Positions 2,823-16,037 of a stretch of DNA of 64,000 nucleotides are shown here, piece after piece. Under the pieces are notes generated by a model. That model saw nothing but the letters and a program-made list of their open reading frames with translations. It was not told where the DNA came from and searched no databases. The stretch spans positions 1-64,000 of the forward strand of contig JAXLNO010001854.1 of the NCBI GenBank assembly GCA_038087875.1, given 5' to 3'. A program made the position numbers and the translations under genes. Within the stretch, counting starts at the first letter, position 1. Each line of letters opens with the position of its first letter. The stretch comes from Malacoraja senta (Eukaryota).

Positions 2823-3131
2823 GGCTCAGTGGTGCAGCGGTAGACTTACTCGATTACAGCACCATAGACCCAGGTTGGATCCTGATTACGGATGCTGTCT
2901 GTACGGAGTTTGTCCATTCTCCCCATTACCGTGTGGGTTTTTCCCGAGATGTTCGGATTCTTCCCACATTCCAAAGACGTATAGGTTTGTAGGTTAATTG
3001 GCTTGGTCTAGAATGTAAATTGTCCCTAGTGTGTGTAGGATAGTGTTATTGTGTGGGGGTTGCTGGTCAGTGTGGACTCGCACGAAGGGCCTGTTTCCAT
3101 GCTGTATCTCTAAGCTAAAAACTAAACTAAA
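2823..3131 (+). mobile_element. HE1-like elasmobranch tRNA-derived SINE (representative copy)
   Basis: GTGGTGCAGCGGTAG..GATCCTGATTACGG..GTTTGTAGGTTAATTGG..GCTGTATCTCTAAG(CTAAA)n tail. Further copies near 5703-5995(-), 7181-7470(-), 7525-7812(-), 18920-19240(-), 35386-35690(-), 38215-38468(+) and elsewhere. Confidence 0.8.
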
Positions 3132-3321
3132 GGCTCCTGACCCAAATTGTCACCTGATTATTGATGCTGCCTGCCCCACTGAGTTCATCCAGCACTTGCA
3201 TCTGCAGGTCCTTGTGACTCCCTTATTCAAAGTTATTGTATTGTTATCAGTTTTAGCATTAATAACTTAGTTATTTTCAGTGAATGATACAATCATACTT
3301 ATTTTTGTTTATGCATTGCAG

Positions 3322-3582
3322 ATTTACACCATCTTGCATTTTACTACCTGTTGAACCATGGATTGAATGAGCTGCCTGAGTACAGTATGGTAGCAATGCT
3401 GGATGACGTCCAGATAGCATATTTTGACAGCACACTAGAGCGGGCTGTTCCCAGACAGCGATGGATGGCCCAGTCTTTCCCGCAGGATCACTGGGATTCA
3501 ATGGCCATCACAGTTGCAGGTTTTCATGGGATTGTCAGAGGAAATGCTGAGATAGTCTACCAACAGCAACATGGTATCTCAA
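3322..3582 (+). CDS. MHC class I alpha1 exon
   Basis: ttgcag|AT...TCA A|gtaagt, 261 nt, phase 1-1; (D)LHHLAFYYLLNHGLNELPEYSMVAMLDDVQIAYFDSTLERAVPRQRWMAQSFPQDHWDSMAITVAGFHGIVRGNAEIVYQQQHGIS. The LDDxQxxYFDS..PRxxWM..xW pattern is typical of class I alpha1. Confidence 0.93.
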
Positions 3583-5327
3583 GTAAGTGTCGTGAGCGGA
3601 CCTGGGGTAGACACTCAGTGATGACACAGATGGATTTTGTTTTACTTTTATTGTTGACACATGATTCTCTGATACACTTTTTTTGCATTAGTCAATCACA
3701 TCAAAGAAAACTATTCATAAATACAATCAAACCAAACTCGTACAATAGGTAGAGCAAAGAGTGCAGAATGTAGTTCTCAGCATTGTAATGTACCAGTGCC
3801 AGAGACAAAGTCCAGTGTCTACAATGGGGTTGAGGTGAACCCTAGCATAAGGGAGGACTGTTCAGAAACCTGATAACATAGGGGAGGAAACAGTTACTGA
3901 GTCTGGTGGTGCACGCTTTAATGCTTACGTACCTTCTGCAGGAAGAAGGAGTGACCAGAACGGGACAAATCTTTGATTATGTTGTCTGCTTTCCTGAACC
4001 AGTTGAAATACAGATGGATTCACTGGTGGGGAATCATGTTTGTGTGATCGATTGTGCTACATCTCCACCTCTCTGCAATTTCCAGCGGTCTTGGGCAGAA
4101 CTCTTTCCAAACTAAGTTGTGATGCAACCTGTCAGTATGCTTTCTATGGCACATTTATAGAAGTTTGTAAGAGTCATTGGAGATGCCGCATTTCCTTAGT
4201 CTCCTGAGGCAGTAGGGGAACCAGAAACTCTCAACCTTTTTCACTTCAGCACCATTGATGCTGTTTCAGACATTTACTCCATAACATTTTGATAGAGACA
4301 CGGCCCATCGTCTATATTTAATGTGTCCTAACTGCTGAACACACAGTCATAACAGTTGGCTGGTGATAGTCTCTTTATGGGTTAAGCATTTGATATTCAA
4401 CACCAGTAATAAGTGGATGGATTGGATCATCTGTTTTGTTGGGCTGGAATGAGGGAGAAACCATTAGTTTATTTATAGCCTGATCATCTAGAGATGGGAT
4501 CTTGATTTAAGCTGGTTGATGGTGACTATGAGGTATTCCCTCAGTAATAATATTGTGTTAATCCAGCATCCCCTCAATATTGGCAACAATCCTCAGAGGG
4601 TGTAGCAATCCCACACAGTGCAACAGCCTTGATGTACTTCCCATCTGCATTGCCTTAACCTTCAGACTGACCTGTTGGCTCTGTAGCATTGCCCATCTGA
4701 CAATGCACTTCTTCCTCTGTTCTTTATGTACGACAGTGCAGAATCTGAGTTCCACCCTTCTGACACAGCAGAACTCCTTTAGTGTTACATCCGCAACAGT
4801 AAAGCTCCCCCCCCATAACACTTGAGGTTAGTCCATGCCCTCAGTATATAGACCATGGGTCATTGAGTCACACATCATGGAAACCGGCCCTTCTGCTCAC
4901 TGAATCCACATTGATCATCCATTGTGCTAAGATGGAGTCACAGCAAACTGCAGATGCTGCCAATCTGAATTTAAAACAAACAGGAGGAACTCAACGAGTC
5001 AGGCAGCATGCTGTGGAAAAATGGACAGAAAACATATGAGACCAGGACCATTTAGAGTGATGGGGTAGAGTGGAGAAAGCTGGAAAAGAAAAGTAGTCTG
5101 TGTAGGATAGTGTTAATATGCGGGGACCACTGGTCGGTGCGGACTCGGTGGGCCGAAGGGCCTGTTTCCGCGCTGTATCTCTGAGCTAAACCTGCTCCTG
5201 TGCTGTACAGCTCCATGTTGTGTTCTGTTATGCCTGTTTGTACCATGCTGAGAACTGATTTGTAAATTGCCTCTCCCTTCCATCCACTCTCCCCAACACA
5301 AATCCTCCACCCCTACCTCAGCCCCAG

Positions 5328-5603
5328 CTGTTTGCTTTGTGCAGGGTTTCTGCGGCTGTGAAGTGGACAGTGACAATTCCACTGATGGGTTTGTCAGACT
5401 GGGTTATGATGGGGAGGATGCCTGTGCTTTTGACAAGGACAGAATGCACTGGATTGCACTACGTCCAGATTTCCAGATGCTAGCAGATCGGTGGAACGTC
5501 AACACCTTCATGAACAAGTATTTTAAAGATCTCCTGGAGAAGGACTGTGTGAAGTGGCTGCGGATATATCTGGAGTGTGGACAAGAAGCACTACAGAGGA
5601 GAG
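5328..5603 (+). CDS. MHC class I alpha2 exon
   Basis: cccag|CT...AGA G|gtacac, canonical 276 nt, phase 1-1; (T)VCFVQGFCGCEVDSDNSTDGFVRLGYDGEDACAFDKDRMHWIALRPDFQMLADRWNVNTFMNKYFKDLLEKDCVKWLRIYLECGQEALQRR. C101/C164, YDGED, W133, W147 and W167 equivalents present. Confidence 0.95.
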
Positions 5604-6807
5604 GTACACGACGTAGGCACTCTGACTGATGGGCCAGAGGATATCCTCTGGATAGATCAGGTGGGAAATATCATGCACTTCAGGCTGTCACTTGAGTAAT
5701 TATTTAGTTTAGTTTAGAGATACAGCGCGGAAACCCACCGAGACCGCACCGAGCAGCCATGCCCGCACACTAACACTATCCTACACACACTAGGGACAAT
5801 TTGCATTTATACCAATCCAATTAACCTACAAATTTGTACGTCTTTCGAGTGTGAGGGGAAACCGAAGATCTCGGATAAAACCCATGCAGGTCACAGGGAG
5901 AACGTACAAACTCTGTAAAGACAAGCACCCGTAGTTAGTAACAAACCCAGGTCTCTGGCGCTGTAAGGCAGTAGCTCGACCGCTTCGCCACCCTGTTCTA
6001 CAACGTGGGTATCAGTAAATTGTCTGGCAACGTGCCTCTTAGATGGAACCAGTGGGTAGGAAGTGCAAGTGAAAGATAAATATTGTACCAGTGTCCTTTA
6101 TCCACAGTCATATAGATATTCAGGAAATGGAGGAATATGTATCTTGGTCTTATGTTTAGCACCGACCTTGTGGCCTGAAGGGTCTGTTGCTGAACTGATC
6201 AGAAACCCAATCAGATTCTCTATTTGCCTCTATTACTCCTTGGGATGGTGACATTCAATTTCCAACAGTTCTCTATTTGAAGAACTTCTTCCTCCCATTC
6301 CCTCTTGGAATATTTAGTGTTATTATTCAGCAGAGATTCATGAACAGGTAGAAGCAATCATGTCTACAGTATCAATCCCAATGGTGAGTTATACTCCTCC
6401 ATTGGGCCTGCATTCCCCTTTCATCTGTGCTGTCAGTTAAAGTCTGGAGCTAAGATAAGGAGCATGTCAGTGATATTAAAGCTAAATGTTTTGTTGTTTT
6501 GCCAGAAATGCAAAATGAAAAGAGAAAAGGCTGTAAACTTTGTGCAAGATAGAACTGCAGATGATGGTTTACACTGAAGATAGAAGATGTTGGTGTAACT
6601 CAGTGGGTCAGATAGCATCTCTGGGCATTCCTTCTCTCCAGAATGCTGCCTGACCTGCTGAGTTATTCCAGCATTTTGGGTCTAGGCTGAAAACTTAGTT
6701 CAGCCAGAGAAAAAACTCTGATTGGGAAAGTGGTGAGTTGCAGTGATCTTACAATTGAAGGCTTTTGTTCATGTCTTCACTGATTCTGACTCTTCTTACA
6801 CTTGCAG

Positions 6808-7080
6808 AAACCCCTGAGGTGTTTATTGGGATTAAACGTGATGGGTCGCAATCACTGAGACTCTCCTGCCTTGTCACAGGCTTCTAGCCACGGGCCATCG
6901 ATGTAACGTGGCTGAGAGATGGTGAGGGGGTCCATGAGTCTGAATCCAGTGATCTGTTGCCCAATTGGGATGGGACTTACCAGCTGAAGAATACAATTCA
7001 ACTGAATAGAGAAGATGTGGCAAAATTCTCCTGTTACATCGAACATGCAACTCTGCTGCAGGGAGTCAATGTTCCACAGG
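6808..7080 (+). CDS. MHC class I alpha3 (C1-set Ig) exon with premature stop
   Basis: ttgcag|AA...CAG G|gtaagt, 273 nt; (E)TPEVFIGIKRDGSQSLRLSCLVTGF*PRAIDVTWLRDGEGVHESESSDLLPNWDGTYQLKNTIQLNREDVAKFSCYIEHATLLQGVNVPQ; TAG at 6885-6887 replaces the Y of GFYP. Confidence 0.95.
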
Positions 7081-8274
7081 GTAAGTGGCAAGTCAATGAG
7101 GCTGATCACTTGAGACCATAAACCTCCTGGACTGAGATAACAGTCTCAACTCACACTCTTAACTAAGCTGTGGATTTAGACTTTAGGCTTTAGAGATATG
7201 CTGCAGATACAGGCCCCTCAGCTCACTGAGTCCTCGCTGAATAGTGATCAACCCATACATTTACACTAACCTACACAGTACGGACAATTTACAATTTTAC
7301 CTAAGCCAAGTAACCTACAAACCTGTATGTCTTTGTAGTGTGGGAGGAAACCCACGCAGTCACAGGGAGAACATACAATGTCCTTGCAGACAGCACCTGT
7401 AGTCAGGATCAAACCCAGGTCTCTGGTGCAGTAAGGCAGCAGCTCTACCGCTACGCCACTGTGCCACCCATTATTAATTTGTGGTTATCTAATTGCTCAT
7501 AATTATTGATAGTCAATGGAATGTGGTTTTAGTTTAAGAGATACAGCGCAGAAACCGGCCCTTCAGCCCACCGAGTCTGCGTCAACCAGCGATCCCTGCA
7601 CACTTACATTATCTTACTTATTAGGGGACAATTTACAATTATACCAAGCCAATTAACCTACAAACCTGTATGTCTTTGGACTGAGTGAGGAAACCGGAGA
7701 TCCAGGCAAAACCCACGCAAGTCCCGGGGAGAAGGTACAAAACTCTGTACAGACGGGACCCGTAGTCAGAATTGAACCGGGTCTCTGGCGCTATAAGGCA
7801 GCAGTTCCACCGAGTGGGCAAAGCAGAGCCAAATGGAATACAGTGTAGCAAGTGTCTGGTTTTACATTTTGGCAGTCGGAATAAAGACATAGACTATTTT
7901 CTAAATGGGGAGAGAATTGAGAAACCTGAGCTACAAAGTGGGAGTACTAGTGCAGGATTCCCAAATAGTTCATTTGCAGATTGAGTCAGTGGTAAGTAAG
8001 GCAAATGCAATGCCAGCATTCATTTCGGGGGGCGTAGAATATAAAAACAATAATATAATGCTGAGGATTTATCGGGCACTGGTGAAGACACATTTGGAAT
8101 ATTGTGAGCAGTTTTGGGCTCCATATTAGAAAGGATGTGCTGGCTTTGGAGAGGGTCGAGAGGATGTATGTCCTGGGGATGATTGATTTAACGTATGAGG
8201 AGTGTTTGAAGTCTCTGTGCCTGTGCTCATGGGATTTAGAAGGATGAGGTGGGAATCTCATTGAAACCTACCAG

Positions 8275-11200: not shown

Positions 11201-11788
11201 GTTATTGTTCAGCCCTCTACCACCTCCAGTTTAAATTCCTTTTAGAATATTTATGGAGGATCAGGAAACCAGAAGCGAGAGTTACTCCAGGGAGATACTC
11301 CTGATCCAGGGTCAGGGAGTGATTCTGTGTTAGTTTTCAGCGGTTGCGGCGAGGCAGCAATGGCGGCCAAATCTCCCACAATTCAAAGCGAGGGAGAAAG
11401 TGCCCAGCGCCGACCAGTTGCCGTGGCAGTGCGCATGCGCAGGGCGGCCGATGACGTGCGGGCTGTGGTTGTGCGCATGTGCAGGGGAGGACGTGCTGGC
11501 CGTAGCAGTGTGCATGTGCAAGGCGGCCGGCCGTGCCAGCGGATGAGGAGCGAGCGGAGAACGGAGACCCGGACACGGAGAGTGACAGACGGAGATAGAG
11601 ATAGAGAGGGGGGCCGCCCCGCCCAGAGTTGAACGGCTGGTGTCCTGCCTTGGCCGGAGGCCCCCTATATTTCAGGGCCCCAGGCTTCAGCCTATGAAGC
11701 CTAGTGGTAAATCCGGCTCTGCGAGCCCCTCCTAGATCTCCAGGCCCTAAACTGAAGCTTGTCCATCTTATATGTAAATCCGGCCCTG
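8275..11788. mobile_element. Non-autonomous hAT-type element with nested insertions, in the alpha3-TM intron
   Basis: 14-bp TIRs CAGGGCCGGATTTA / TAAATCCGGCCCTG; perfect 8-bp TSD CCTACCAG (8267-74, 11789-96); splits a CR1 fragment whose sequence resumes across the TSD. Confidence 0.9.
8950..9570 (+). mobile_element. Penelope-like element fragments (GIY-YIG C-terminus, terminal repeat, Zn-linker)
   Basis: GENKCRLGDCFAQHLHSVRNNQPDLPVAQHFNSPSHSESDLSVLGL; degenerate hammerhead core at about 9315-9342; FPSPPLLAFHRDRSLRNSLV..PGTFHCNCRKC. Confidence 0.85.
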
Positions 11789-13151
11789 CCTACCAGATAA
11801 TGAAATGCCTGGTTAGTTGATGGGAAAGGAAGTTTTCAGTAATGGGAGAGTCTAGCACAGCCTCACAATAAAAATACCTACCTTCAATATGGAGATGAGG
11901 AGGAATCTCTTTAGTCACAGGGTGGTGAATCTGTGGAATTCATTGATACAAACAGCTGTGTGGGTCAAGTCATTGCATATTTTTCAAGCAGAGATTGATA
12001 GGTTCTTGATGAGTACGGGTGACAAAGGTTACAGGGAGAAGGCTAGAGAATGGGATTTAGCGGTAAAAAATAGATCTGCTATGACTGAATGGTGGAGTAG
12101 ACTCAATGGACTTGAAAGGCATAATTCCGCTCCAATATCTTATGGTCAAAATTATTCTTATGTCACCCTTAACTCACCCATCCAAATGTAGGAACAGTGG
12201 AAGCAAGATAGGCTGATCCTGGACAAGGTCTCTTATCTTCTTCCTTGGGCATCTAGCTAATTTTCTGATAGTAGCTAGCTACACAAAAGACCAATAGTGG
12301 TGCCATATTATCAGGCTGAAGTAGCAGCACCTGTTCTGTAGCTGACTTATTTGTTCCAGACAAGACCTCTGCAAAGATCTTCACACCAGGGCCAAGCTGA
12401 CATGGTTAAGATTGCTGGTCAGTACAAATAGACAGTAGTGTTAATGTCTGTGTGTGCCTATGTGTGTGTGTGTGGGCTCATGTGTGTGAGACAGTGAGGG
12501 GGAGAGAGAGAGAAAGAGAGAGCATGTGTATGTGAGAAAATTAAACTCAGATATCATTGAAATATCAGCAAAGATTAAAACCTTTGAAGTTTTATCAACT
12601 ATAAATGGGTTCACTTTTATTTGCTATAATAACAATCATCAACATAAGAAAATGGCCTTGTTGACCTCTACACTGTAAATAGTCATCTATTTCTGACGTA
12701 CTTGATTCTTTAAATTCTTAATTAAATGCTGCAGATAAAATCTCAATACCTCAATGCTAATATGAACTTAATGATTTTTCATTGATCATTTTAAGCACAT
12801 CCATCCTCTGTATAAATACTTAAATCTAAAACGTTATTACTTTTTAATTAGATATGAACAGTGCTACTTTAATTTAGATAATAAAATCATTACAATGTTG
12901 TTATTGATCACTAAATGTTTAAAATGCACTATACAGTGGCTTGCAAAAGTTTTCATACCCCTTGAACTTTTCCACATTTTGTCACGTTACAACCACAAAC
13001 GTAAATGTATTTTATTGGGATTTTATGTGATAGACCAACACAAAGTGGTGCATAATTGTGAAGTGGAAGGAAAATGATACATGGTTTTCAAATTTTGTTA
13101 CAAATAAAAAACTGAAAAGTGTCGCGTGCAAAAGTATTCAGCCCCCCTGAG

Positions 13152-14172
13152 TCAATACTTTGTAGAACCACCTTTCGCTGCAATTACAGCTGCAAGTCTT
13201 TTGGGGTATATCTCTACCAGCTTTGCACATCTAGAGACTGACATTTTGCCCATTCTTCTTTGCAAAATAGGTCAAGCTCAGTCAGATTGGATGGAGAGCA
13301 TCTGTGAACAGCAATTTTCAAGTCTTGCCAGAGATTCTCAATTGGATTTAGGTCTGGACTTTGACTGGGCCATTCTAACACATGAATACGCTTTGATCTA
13401 AACCATTCCATTGTAGCTCTGGCTGTATGTTTAGGGTCGTTGTCCTGCTGGAAGGTGAACTTCCGCCCCGGTCTCAAGTCTTTTGCAGACTCTAACAGGT
13501 TTTCTTCCAAAATTGCCCTGTATTTGGCTCCATCCATCTTCCCCCATCAACTCTGACCAGCTTCCCTGTCCCTGCTGAAGAAAAGCATCCCCACAGCATA
13601 ATGCTGCCACCACCATGTTTCACAGTGGGGATGGTGTGTTCAGGGTGATGTGCAGTGTTAGGTTTCCGCCACACATAGCGTTTTGCATTTAGGCCAAAAA
13701 CTTCAATTTTGGTCTCATCTGACCAGAGCACCTTCCTCCACATGTTTGCTGTGTCCCCCACATGGCTTGTGGCAAACTGCAAATGGGACTTCTTATGGGC
13801 TTTTTTCAACAATGGCTTTCTTCTTGCCACTCTTCCATAAAGGCCCGATTTGTGGAGTGCACGACTAATAGTTTTCCTGTGGACAGATTCTCCCACCTGA
13901 GCTGTGGATCTCTGCAGCTCCTGCAGAGTTACCATGGGCCTCTTGGCTGCTTCTCTGATCAATGCTCTCCTTGCCCGGCCTGTCAGTTTAGGTGGACGGC
14001 CATGTCTTGGTAGGTTTGCAGTTGTGCCATACTCTTTCCATTTTCGGATGATGGATTGAACAGTGCTCCGTGAGATGTTCAAAGCTTGGGATATTTATTT
14101 ATAACCTAACCCTGTTTTAAACTTCTCCACAACTTTATCCCTGACCTGTCTGGTGTGTTCCTTTGGCTTCAT
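13152..14172 (-). pseudogene. Tc1 transposase (DD34E), one stop and two frameshifts
   Basis: [65 protein letters not shown] (34 aa) [11 protein letters not shown], ends KGGSTKY*. Confidence 0.96.
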
Positions 14173-14253
14173 GATGTTGTTTGTTCACTAATGTTCTCTA
14201 ACAAACCTCTGAGGCCTTCACAGAACAGCTGTATTTATACTGAGATTAGATTA

Positions 14254-14923: not shown

Positions 14924-15057
14924 AGAGGGCAGTGAAAGAAGATATGAAGATTAGGATCGTGACTGGAGCTGTAATTGTTCCTCTCATTCTCCTGGGGATC
15001 ATCCTTGGAATTGGTTGCTGGAAGAAGAGGAAAAAGAGAAAACCTTTCAATGAACAG
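14924..15057 (+). CDS. Connecting peptide/transmembrane/basic stop-transfer exon of the class I gene
   Basis: caacag|AG phase 1; (E)RAVKEDMKIRIVTGAVIVPLILLGIILGIGCWKKRKKRKPFNEQ; hydrophobic helix then polybasic stretch; likely phase-0 donor CAG|GTACCA. Confidence 0.85.
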
Positions 15058-16037
15058 GTACCAGCTGACAACAGCAGAGACCAGGAGAGGACCATGAAGC
15101 ACAATCAGCTTCCTTTGGGATGCAGAGGAGGTCTACCGGAATGATGCCTGGATTAGTGGGGTATTAGCCACAGGGAGAAGTTGGACAGACTGGACAGTTG
15201 GATTGTTTTCTCTGGAATGTCGGGGATTGAGGGGAGACCTGACAGTAATATATCAAACTGGGAGGAGTAGAGATAGGGTAGACCATCAGACTTTTTACCC
15301 AGGAAGGAAATATCAAATAAGAGCAGGTATTGCTTTACAATGAGTGGCAAAGTTAAAAAAAGATGTGCAGGACAAGTGTTTTACGCCAAGGGTGGTGAGT
15401 GACTGGAATATGCTGCTGGAGGTGGTGGTGGAAGCAGATATGATAGTGGCATTTAAGAGACTTTTAGATAGGCACATGTATATGCAGGGAATGGATGGAT
15501 ATGGATTATGTGCAAGCAGATAACAATTGGTCTTGGCATCATGTTCGGCACAAACATTGTGGGTCAAAGGGCCTGTTCTTGTGCTGTACTGTTCTATGCT
15601 CTTTATTGTATCAATGCTGACTGATGACTTTACATTCAGCCATTAATTTTTCAAATGCTGTCTTCACTGCAGTTACCCTGTGATTCCAAAGTCATACATT
15701 GCGCCACATTTTGGAATAAAAGGTCGCCTATTTGATTGATTGATACTTTATTATCACATGTGACATGTCACAGTGAAATTCTTTGCTTTGCATAACATAC
15801 ACAAGGTATACATACACAAGTCACCATGTATAGGGTGTCGACACAGTTACAAAGTAATCATTACAGTCCCCAATGGTCCCTCTTTGTTCTCGGCAGCCCC
15901 TCCATGTTGGGTTCACCTGTGTTATCCGCGCCCCCTCCCCCCCCAACCCCGGGACCCTCTTTGTTATCTTTGTTCTCGGCAGTCCTCCCATGTTGGGTCC
16001 CTCTTTAAAATAGTTACGAAGAAGATTTATTTTCCAG

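Follow-up and report, generated by a model that had tools for sequence, protein, structure and literature searches.

In a 64,000-nt stretch of the skate Malacoraja senta (contig JAXLNO010001854.1; "the window", whose + strand coordinates are used throughout) we find a class I gene of the major histocompatibility complex (MHC). It is quite probably a disabled copy from a conserved elasmobranch lineage of non-classical class I molecules that is the sister of the shark UGA lineage, goes back to before the split of sharks and rays, and would hold a lipid-like ligand. A preliminary description, based on the letters of this stretch, had taken the gene for a divergent non-classical class I molecule with a hydrophobic groove and a candidate presenter of lipids or small ligands. 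This interpretation is supported in part: the greasy groove devoid of peptide anchors is a trait of the whole lineage, and this particular copy is broken.

Class I identity of the gene

Four + strand exons with canonical AG/GT borders encode alpha1, alpha2, alpha3 and the connecting-peptide/transmembrane (TM) region (Table 1). Each domain has one exon of its own, in phase 1 throughout, as is usual in class I genes. The Pfam MHC_I model matches alpha2 with 60.7 bits and alpha1 with 25 bits, the latter below the cut-off, and the C1-set model matches the portion of alpha3 downstream of a premature stop codon (see below). The best PDB match is 9ch4_A (UGA) for alpha1 (E 2.4e-22) and alpha3 (E 6.9e-15), whereas alpha2 best matches MR1 chains; with E-values of 2e-22 for alpha1 and 8e-17 for alpha2, the resemblance is not due to chance. 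Fold and domain order are those of a class I heavy chain, with a groove domain, a C1-set alpha3 and a TM segment. The gene keeps the cysteines C101-C164 and, as already stated in the preliminary description, the beta2-microglobulin (beta2m) contact residues Q96, D119, G120 and D122; intact members of the lineage would be expected to pair with beta2m at the cell surface.

Distribution and phylogenetic position of the lineage

A HMMER scan with alpha1 returned one close protein, XP_055486430 (P0001) of the little skate (L. erinacea), and 15 further matches below E 1e-10. A search with P0001 gave a sharply bounded group at 54-72% identity, most species contributing a single model and the next matches reaching 36% or less, comprising Pristis, Mobula, Hypanus, Pristiophorus, Heptranchias, Scyliorhinus, Stegostoma, Hemiscyllium, Mustelus, Cetorhinus and Chiloscyllium; cluster membership extends the group to Hemitrygon, Carcharodon, a second Mobula and S. 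canicula. According to RefSeq gene models, the lineage is present in at least ten shark and five batoid species, mostly with one or two models per species and more in Heptranchias, i.e. it is single- or low-copy. All members bear the automatic RefSeq name 'MR1-like', and cluster look-ups yielded only such automatic names and no curated lineage name. In several sharks, the gene shares a large scaffold with many other class I genes. Heptranchias perlo has eleven near-identical proteins of the lineage (P0173 and P0248-P0257) on several small contigs, which represent either haplotigs or a local expansion of the otherwise single-copy gene.

The spliced product of the window, with X at the stop, was aligned by MAFFT with 70 elasmobranch and teleost class I proteins. 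In the maximum-likelihood tree of class I proteins (calculated without CD1, MR1 and named UEA or UCA sequences), the window's lineage forms one clade (100/100), within which the batoid members stand together (97/95) and the window is placed beside the little skate (100/100). The sister of this clade consists of P0007, P0011 and P0154 (95/87). P0007 matches 9ch4_A at E 1e-138 and the Cetorhinus protein P0021 matches 8gm8_A at E 4e-90, the PDB titles of these entries being 'shark nonclassical MHC class I, UGA' (9CH4) and 'shark nonclassical MHC class I, UFA' (8GM8); by these titles, the window's lineage is sister to UGA and distinct from both UGA and UFA. The two sister clades exclude P0021, three Callorhinchus genes, a classical-type pair and a shark-only multicopy clade (100/100). 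The gene does not group with the 8GM8 sequence and its orthologues, nor is it part of UGA, each of the two sister clades being supported at 100/100 and holding sharks as well as batoids. Since both contain sharks and batoids, the duplication that separated them is older than the shark-batoid split. The gene is thus not nested in UGA, UFA, the classical-type or the multicopy shark clade, a point in support of the preliminary description. The three anchor-less class I genes of Callorhinchus milii (P0200, P0209 and P0215) group loosely with the set of UGA, its sister lineage and UFA (94/86) and could represent these lineages in chimaeras.

The preliminary description had drawn its comparison with the shark UCA and UEA lineages. 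The nearest described relative is instead UGA, for which a structure has been solved (9CH4) and which is the best match in both sequence (38-39% identity) and structure (Z 26.4). The two lineages have the helix motifs AGFHG and MN(K/R)YFK-LLEKDC in common, together with about half of the groove residues (16-17 of 35 by hand count), and both occur in sharks and batoids. On the other hand, UGA keeps Y7, Y59 and K146 where the window's lineage has F7, H59 and R146, and it carries an N86-type glycan site; the window's lineage lacks this usual site and has a conserved NST (N-glycosylation) sequence in alpha2 instead. The groove of UGA is also less hydrophobic (see below), and the stop codon sets the window copy apart from UGA. 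In the little skate, ~42 kb separate the lineage's gene from UGA, both being on one strand of contig JAMYXN010000384.1; judged by collinearity, UGA would start a few kb past the end of the window.

UFA (8GM8, P0021) is likewise an elasmobranch, MHC-linked, low-copy molecule without peptide anchors from the same broad clade of the tree. It is much farther away, however: the lineage member P0169 matches 8gm8_A at E 2e-37 as compared with 5e-64 for 9CH4, and UFA sits on a very long branch and differs from the window's lineage in its groove residues. UEA and UCA have reportedly been described as non-classical lineages with hydrophobic grooves, and UEA is said to be a large multigene family restricted to sharks and undetected in rays, whereas the window's lineage is single- or low-copy and found in five batoids. 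The 41-member shark-only multicopy clade, which is not labelled by named sequences, is probably UEA; the window's lineage is well separated from it. UDA reportedly keeps eight of the nine invariant anchors, while the window's gene keeps two of nine.

The lineage is apparently unnamed; it is not MR1, apparently not CD1 either, and lies outside the presumed UEA clade. The preliminary description had considered it 'possibly unassigned in batoids'. The lineage is not peculiar to batoids, as gene models under the RefSeq label 'MR1-like' occur in at least ten sharks besides the five batoids. A 2023 MBE (Molecular Biology and Evolution) paper mentions UFA as unpublished and labels genes only as 'MHC-Ib' in its supplements, and a third lineage of this kind is mentioned neither there nor in a 2025 review (PMC12562908). 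Our literature search found no primary paper for 9CH4, 8GM8, UFA or UGA. The most serious alternative is that the lineage already carries a published or forthcoming name, as a second UGA gene or under a later letter, which we consider a distinctly smaller, yet appreciable chance. The review describes UFA and UGA as 'single- or low-copy' and refers to unpublished work (PMC12562908), RefSeq models exist in at least 15 species, and the position close to UGA, in the same orientation, in L. erinacea could fit a second UGA gene. However, no describing paper was found in the literature searched, identity to the UGA structure is only ~39%, and the lineage forms a 100/100 clade of sharks and rays of its own, just as UGA does.

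Peptide anchors, groove and putative ligand

The residues of the window at HLA positions 7, 59, 84, 123, 143, 146, 147, 159 and 171 are F H Q A L R W L Y; classical-type fish and shark sequences of the same alignment have YYRFTKWYY there. Seven of the nine residues that anchor peptide termini are thus replaced, mostly by apolar ones, and W147 and Y171 are retained, in exact agreement with the preliminary list (Y7F, Y59H, Y84Q, Y123A, T143L, K146R and Y159L). The gene therefore does not qualify as classical class I of the UAA type. The FHQALRWLY pattern is fixed across the lineage with the sole exception of the carpet sharks Stegostoma, Hemiscyllium and Chiloscyllium (P0175, P0176 and P0261), which have DRLN instead of DRWN, i.e. 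W147L. Also confirmed are the small or hydrophobic residues G97, C99, V114 and L116 and the apolar alpha1 helix, whose peptide MAITVAGFHGIVRGNAEIV is encoded at 3501-3557.

Hydropathy of the groove was calculated as the Kyte-Doolittle mean over 35 HLA-A2 pocket positions mapped via the alignment. The window scores 1.43, with 25 of the 35 positions apolar and two charged, so that the predicted groove is strongly hydrophobic, as proposed. Values range from 1.25 to 1.62 in the window's lineage, from 0.31 to 0.85 in UGA and from -0.05 to 0.41 in classical-type sequences; the UFA-type sequence has 0.70 and the multicopy shark clade averages 0.22, with a maximum of 0.9. The lineage thus has the most hydrophobic set of predicted groove positions among all groups compared, with ~25 apolar and two charged positions out of 35. 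In a comparison of 11 full-length species, 21 of the 35 groove positions do not vary, as against 66 of 143 in the rest of alpha1-alpha2, so that the groove is the better conserved part. The AlphaFold 2 (AF2) model of the little-skate protein, a 91% identical orthologue, has a normal class I fold at a predicted local distance difference test (pLDDT) score of 85 and aligns with class I structures at Z 24-26, UGA being closest (Z 26.4), followed by chicken BF2 and YF1, shark UAA and MR1.

Such a groove is best read as holding a conserved hydrophobic ligand. According to a personal communication in the 2025 review, UFA and UGA resemble CD1 and bind lipids of the CD1d type (PMC12562908). By analogy with what is reported for these two, intact members of the window's lineage may present a single conserved ligand, hydrophobic and lipid-like, in place of peptides. 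The earlier view of a non-peptide-binding lineage is therefore upheld with regard to the lost anchors and the greasy groove, the ligand itself being deduced from sequence. CD1 likewise combines a hydrophobic groove with a lack of peptide anchors, and its class of ligand is likely similar. Beyond these hydrophobic groove positions, however, the lineage has no specific affinity to CD1 in sequence or fold: PDB matches to CD1 come from alpha3 only, and in a Foldseek search of reviewed proteins (Swiss-Prot) CD1c ranks 28th with 22% identity.

The first seven ranks of that search are taken by MR1, which is the closest tetrapod family by phmmer as well; the lineage member P0169 matches MR1 at E ~1e-54 and shark classical class I at 3e-42. 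Both MR1 and the window's lineage have a conserved groove of monomorphic style. One might accordingly think of intact members as MR1-style presenters of a small metabolite, polar or aromatic. We regard this as improbable because, in the aligned Pristis orthologue as well as in the window, A, Y, M, G, M and L stand in place of the MR1 ligand residues K43, R9, S24, R94, Y62 and W156, respectively. Both the Schiff-base lysine K43 and the polar residues that bind the ribityl moiety are thereby missing, and only two of 35 groove positions are charged. The likeness to MR1 is one of general sequence and not of ligand chemistry.

Still less credit is due to the idea that these are non-classical class I molecules binding peptides through unusual anchors. 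The retained W147 and Y171 and the overall class I fold would be in line with it, but of the nine anchors seven have been lost, most of them to apolar residues, the N86 glycan site is absent, and the groove has stayed invariant and hydrophobic over roughly the whole history of elasmobranchs.

A premature stop codon in alpha3

The copy in the window does not have an uninterrupted frame through its domain exons. In alpha3, the tyrosine codon of the GFYP motif is replaced by TAG (Table 1), while tyrosine occupies this position in 17 of 17 other members of the lineage. The two little-skate copies of the gene, L001 and L002, both have TAC, and the stop therefore arose by a single C-to-G transversion. 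As a consequence of the premature TAG, no normal class I chain can be made from this copy.

Use of the copy in spite of the TAG is conceivable if alpha3 were skipped, giving a beta2m-independent alpha1-alpha2-TM protein of the EPCR/ULBP type. The alpha3 exon (273 nt) is symmetric in phase 1, the alpha2-to-TM joint keeps an open frame, and the alpha1, alpha2 and TM exons are intact. Nonetheless we hold this to be very doubtful: alpha3 and its tyrosine are present in all 17 relatives, the alpha3 splice sites look normal, and no skipped transcript was seen, where none of the RNA runs searched contains the locus.

That the TAG, a single-base change, is a mere assembly or sequencing error in an intact gene is the least credible alternative of all, since Logan contigs from two public runs, X1 (sample S1; 6736-7116) and X2 (sample S2; 6744-6934), show zero differences from the window across the TAG while departing from it at three other sites (4052, 4283 and 5448, the last a change of His to Arg). 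Because the TAG occurs in run contigs that differ elsewhere, it is not an assembly slip and also sits on a haplotype that differs from the assembled one. In the region 3200-7200, the unique parts have a very high and even word depth in these runs (~170 in X1 and 1400-2400 in X2), covering introns and exons alike. This is odd for whole-genome data on a skate-sized genome, and the runs may be targeted or clone-based.

Age of the damage and skate copies

Locus L001 of the little skate is collinear with the window; introns and flanks are ~88-90% identical and exons 94.5-97% identical (97% for the alpha1 exon at the nucleotide level). Besides the stop, two window-specific changes, F2L and F93C, affect positions that are conserved in the lineage including the little skate. 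A third change, H132, concerns a site where skate copies already differ from other species and which is polymorphic, X1 and X2 reading R. The window copy would be a recently inactivated pseudogene or a null allele, recent because few other damaging changes have accumulated. Taken together, the damage agrees with a null allele or with function lost recently, after constraint had already been relaxed to some degree.

In the little skate, L002 (JAMYXN010000412.1, ~11717-14217) is a second, decayed copy of the lineage, for which no alpha1 was found and which has a stop in alpha2 (KD*VKW) and a frameshift in alpha3. The skate duplication is old, given that L002 and L001 share only 82-87% nucleotide identity. 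In run X1, a minor contig over 4502-4813 is 93% identical to the window; it derives from another copy and matches neither of the two little-skate copies. From the decayed L002 and this further contig it follows that skates duplicated the gene and are now losing copies.

The XP_055486430 model contains 12 extra residues, GTRPRHSDWWNG, between alpha2 and alpha3 (L001:12983-13021). They look like a read-through beyond the normal alpha2 donor and have an AF2 pLDDT below 50; the equivalent read-through in the window meets a TGA at 5627-5629.

Several points speak against our interpretation of the locus or limit its reach. Lipid binding by the lineage is deduced from sequence, the hydropathy values refer to alignment-mapped HLA-A2 pocket positions and not to a computed cavity, and, unlike CD1, the gene models of the lineage end in tails that show no YxxPhi tyrosine sorting motif. 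As for the state of the window copy, the individuals behind X1 and X2 are possibly not independent of the assembly, and with the leader exon not located, defects upstream are possible as well. The ratio of nonsynonymous to synonymous changes (dN/dS) relative to the little-skate copy is 0.50 overall, ~0.38 for alpha1 and alpha2 and 0.78 for alpha3, so relaxed constraint may predate what 'recent' implies.

Features of the locus

The coordinates of the exons and of the stop codon are compiled in Table 1. For alpha2, two in-frame acceptors come into question. Batoid RefSeq models read T-P-A-(V/I)-F-F at the start of this domain, which fits 5322, while shark models are two residues shorter, which fits 5328. 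A cag at 5342-44, the obvious acceptor by eye, was rejected as it is out of phase with alpha1. Beyond the TM exon, whose 3' structure is provisional, the frame stays open until a TGA at 15142-15144.

Table 1. Exons of the class I gene and its premature stop codon, in window coordinates
Feature	Coordinates	Strand	Details
alpha1 exon	3322..3582	+	261 nt, phase 1; acceptor ttgcag, donor gtaagt
alpha2 exon	5322..5603	+	282 nt, phase 1; acceptor AG at 5320-21
alternative alpha2 start	5328..5603	+	276 nt; acceptor AG at 5326-27, also in-frame
alpha3 (Ig C1-set) exon	6808..7080	+	273 nt, phase 1 at both ends
premature TAG	6885..6887	+	replaces the invariant tyrosine of the GFYP motif in alpha3
connecting-peptide/TM exon	14924..15057	+	located by tblastn with P0001 and P0169; no stop, no frameshift

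A scan for an ATG followed by a hydrophobic stretch and a phase-1 donor did not reveal a leader exon. One candidate at 1064 (MFLLVTL...) was discarded, having no fitting donor and being conserved no better than its flanks. tblastn with the exons and with UGA, UFA and classical-type proteins found no further class I, UGA or UFA exons in the 64 kb, and none of the RNA runs searched provided transcript evidence. The window harbours 16 copies of a short interspersed nuclear element (SINE)-like element of ~300 bp, among them those at 2829-3126, 5094-5191, 5700-5999, 7257-7459 and 7528-7812; an inverted pair of such copies flanks the alpha2 exon. This element is responsible for the huge peaks in depth and for the many 'joints' of the read layout.

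Significance

The UFA and UGA lineages, the UGA structure and gene models of the window's lineage in many species are already known. Going further, we tentatively propose, as a possibility that we would not yet back at even odds, that the window's lineage is a third, unnamed 'CD1-like' lineage beside UFA and UGA. With one gene in most species, an origin before the shark/ray split and the most hydrophobic and invariant groove among the elasmobranch class I genes compared, it might present one lipid-like ligand to innate-like T cells, with the skate copies being lost. The window copy is of interest only as a case of recent gene loss after duplication in skates, and it is the intact orthologues of Pristis (XP_051899694) and the little skate (XP_055486430) that offer themselves as targets for ligand identification. 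If the lineage is indeed unnamed, cartilaginous fish would have three, and not two, old and conserved class I lineages of the non-peptide kind, which, if true, would strengthen the view that antigen presentation of the lipid type is as old as the MHC itself.

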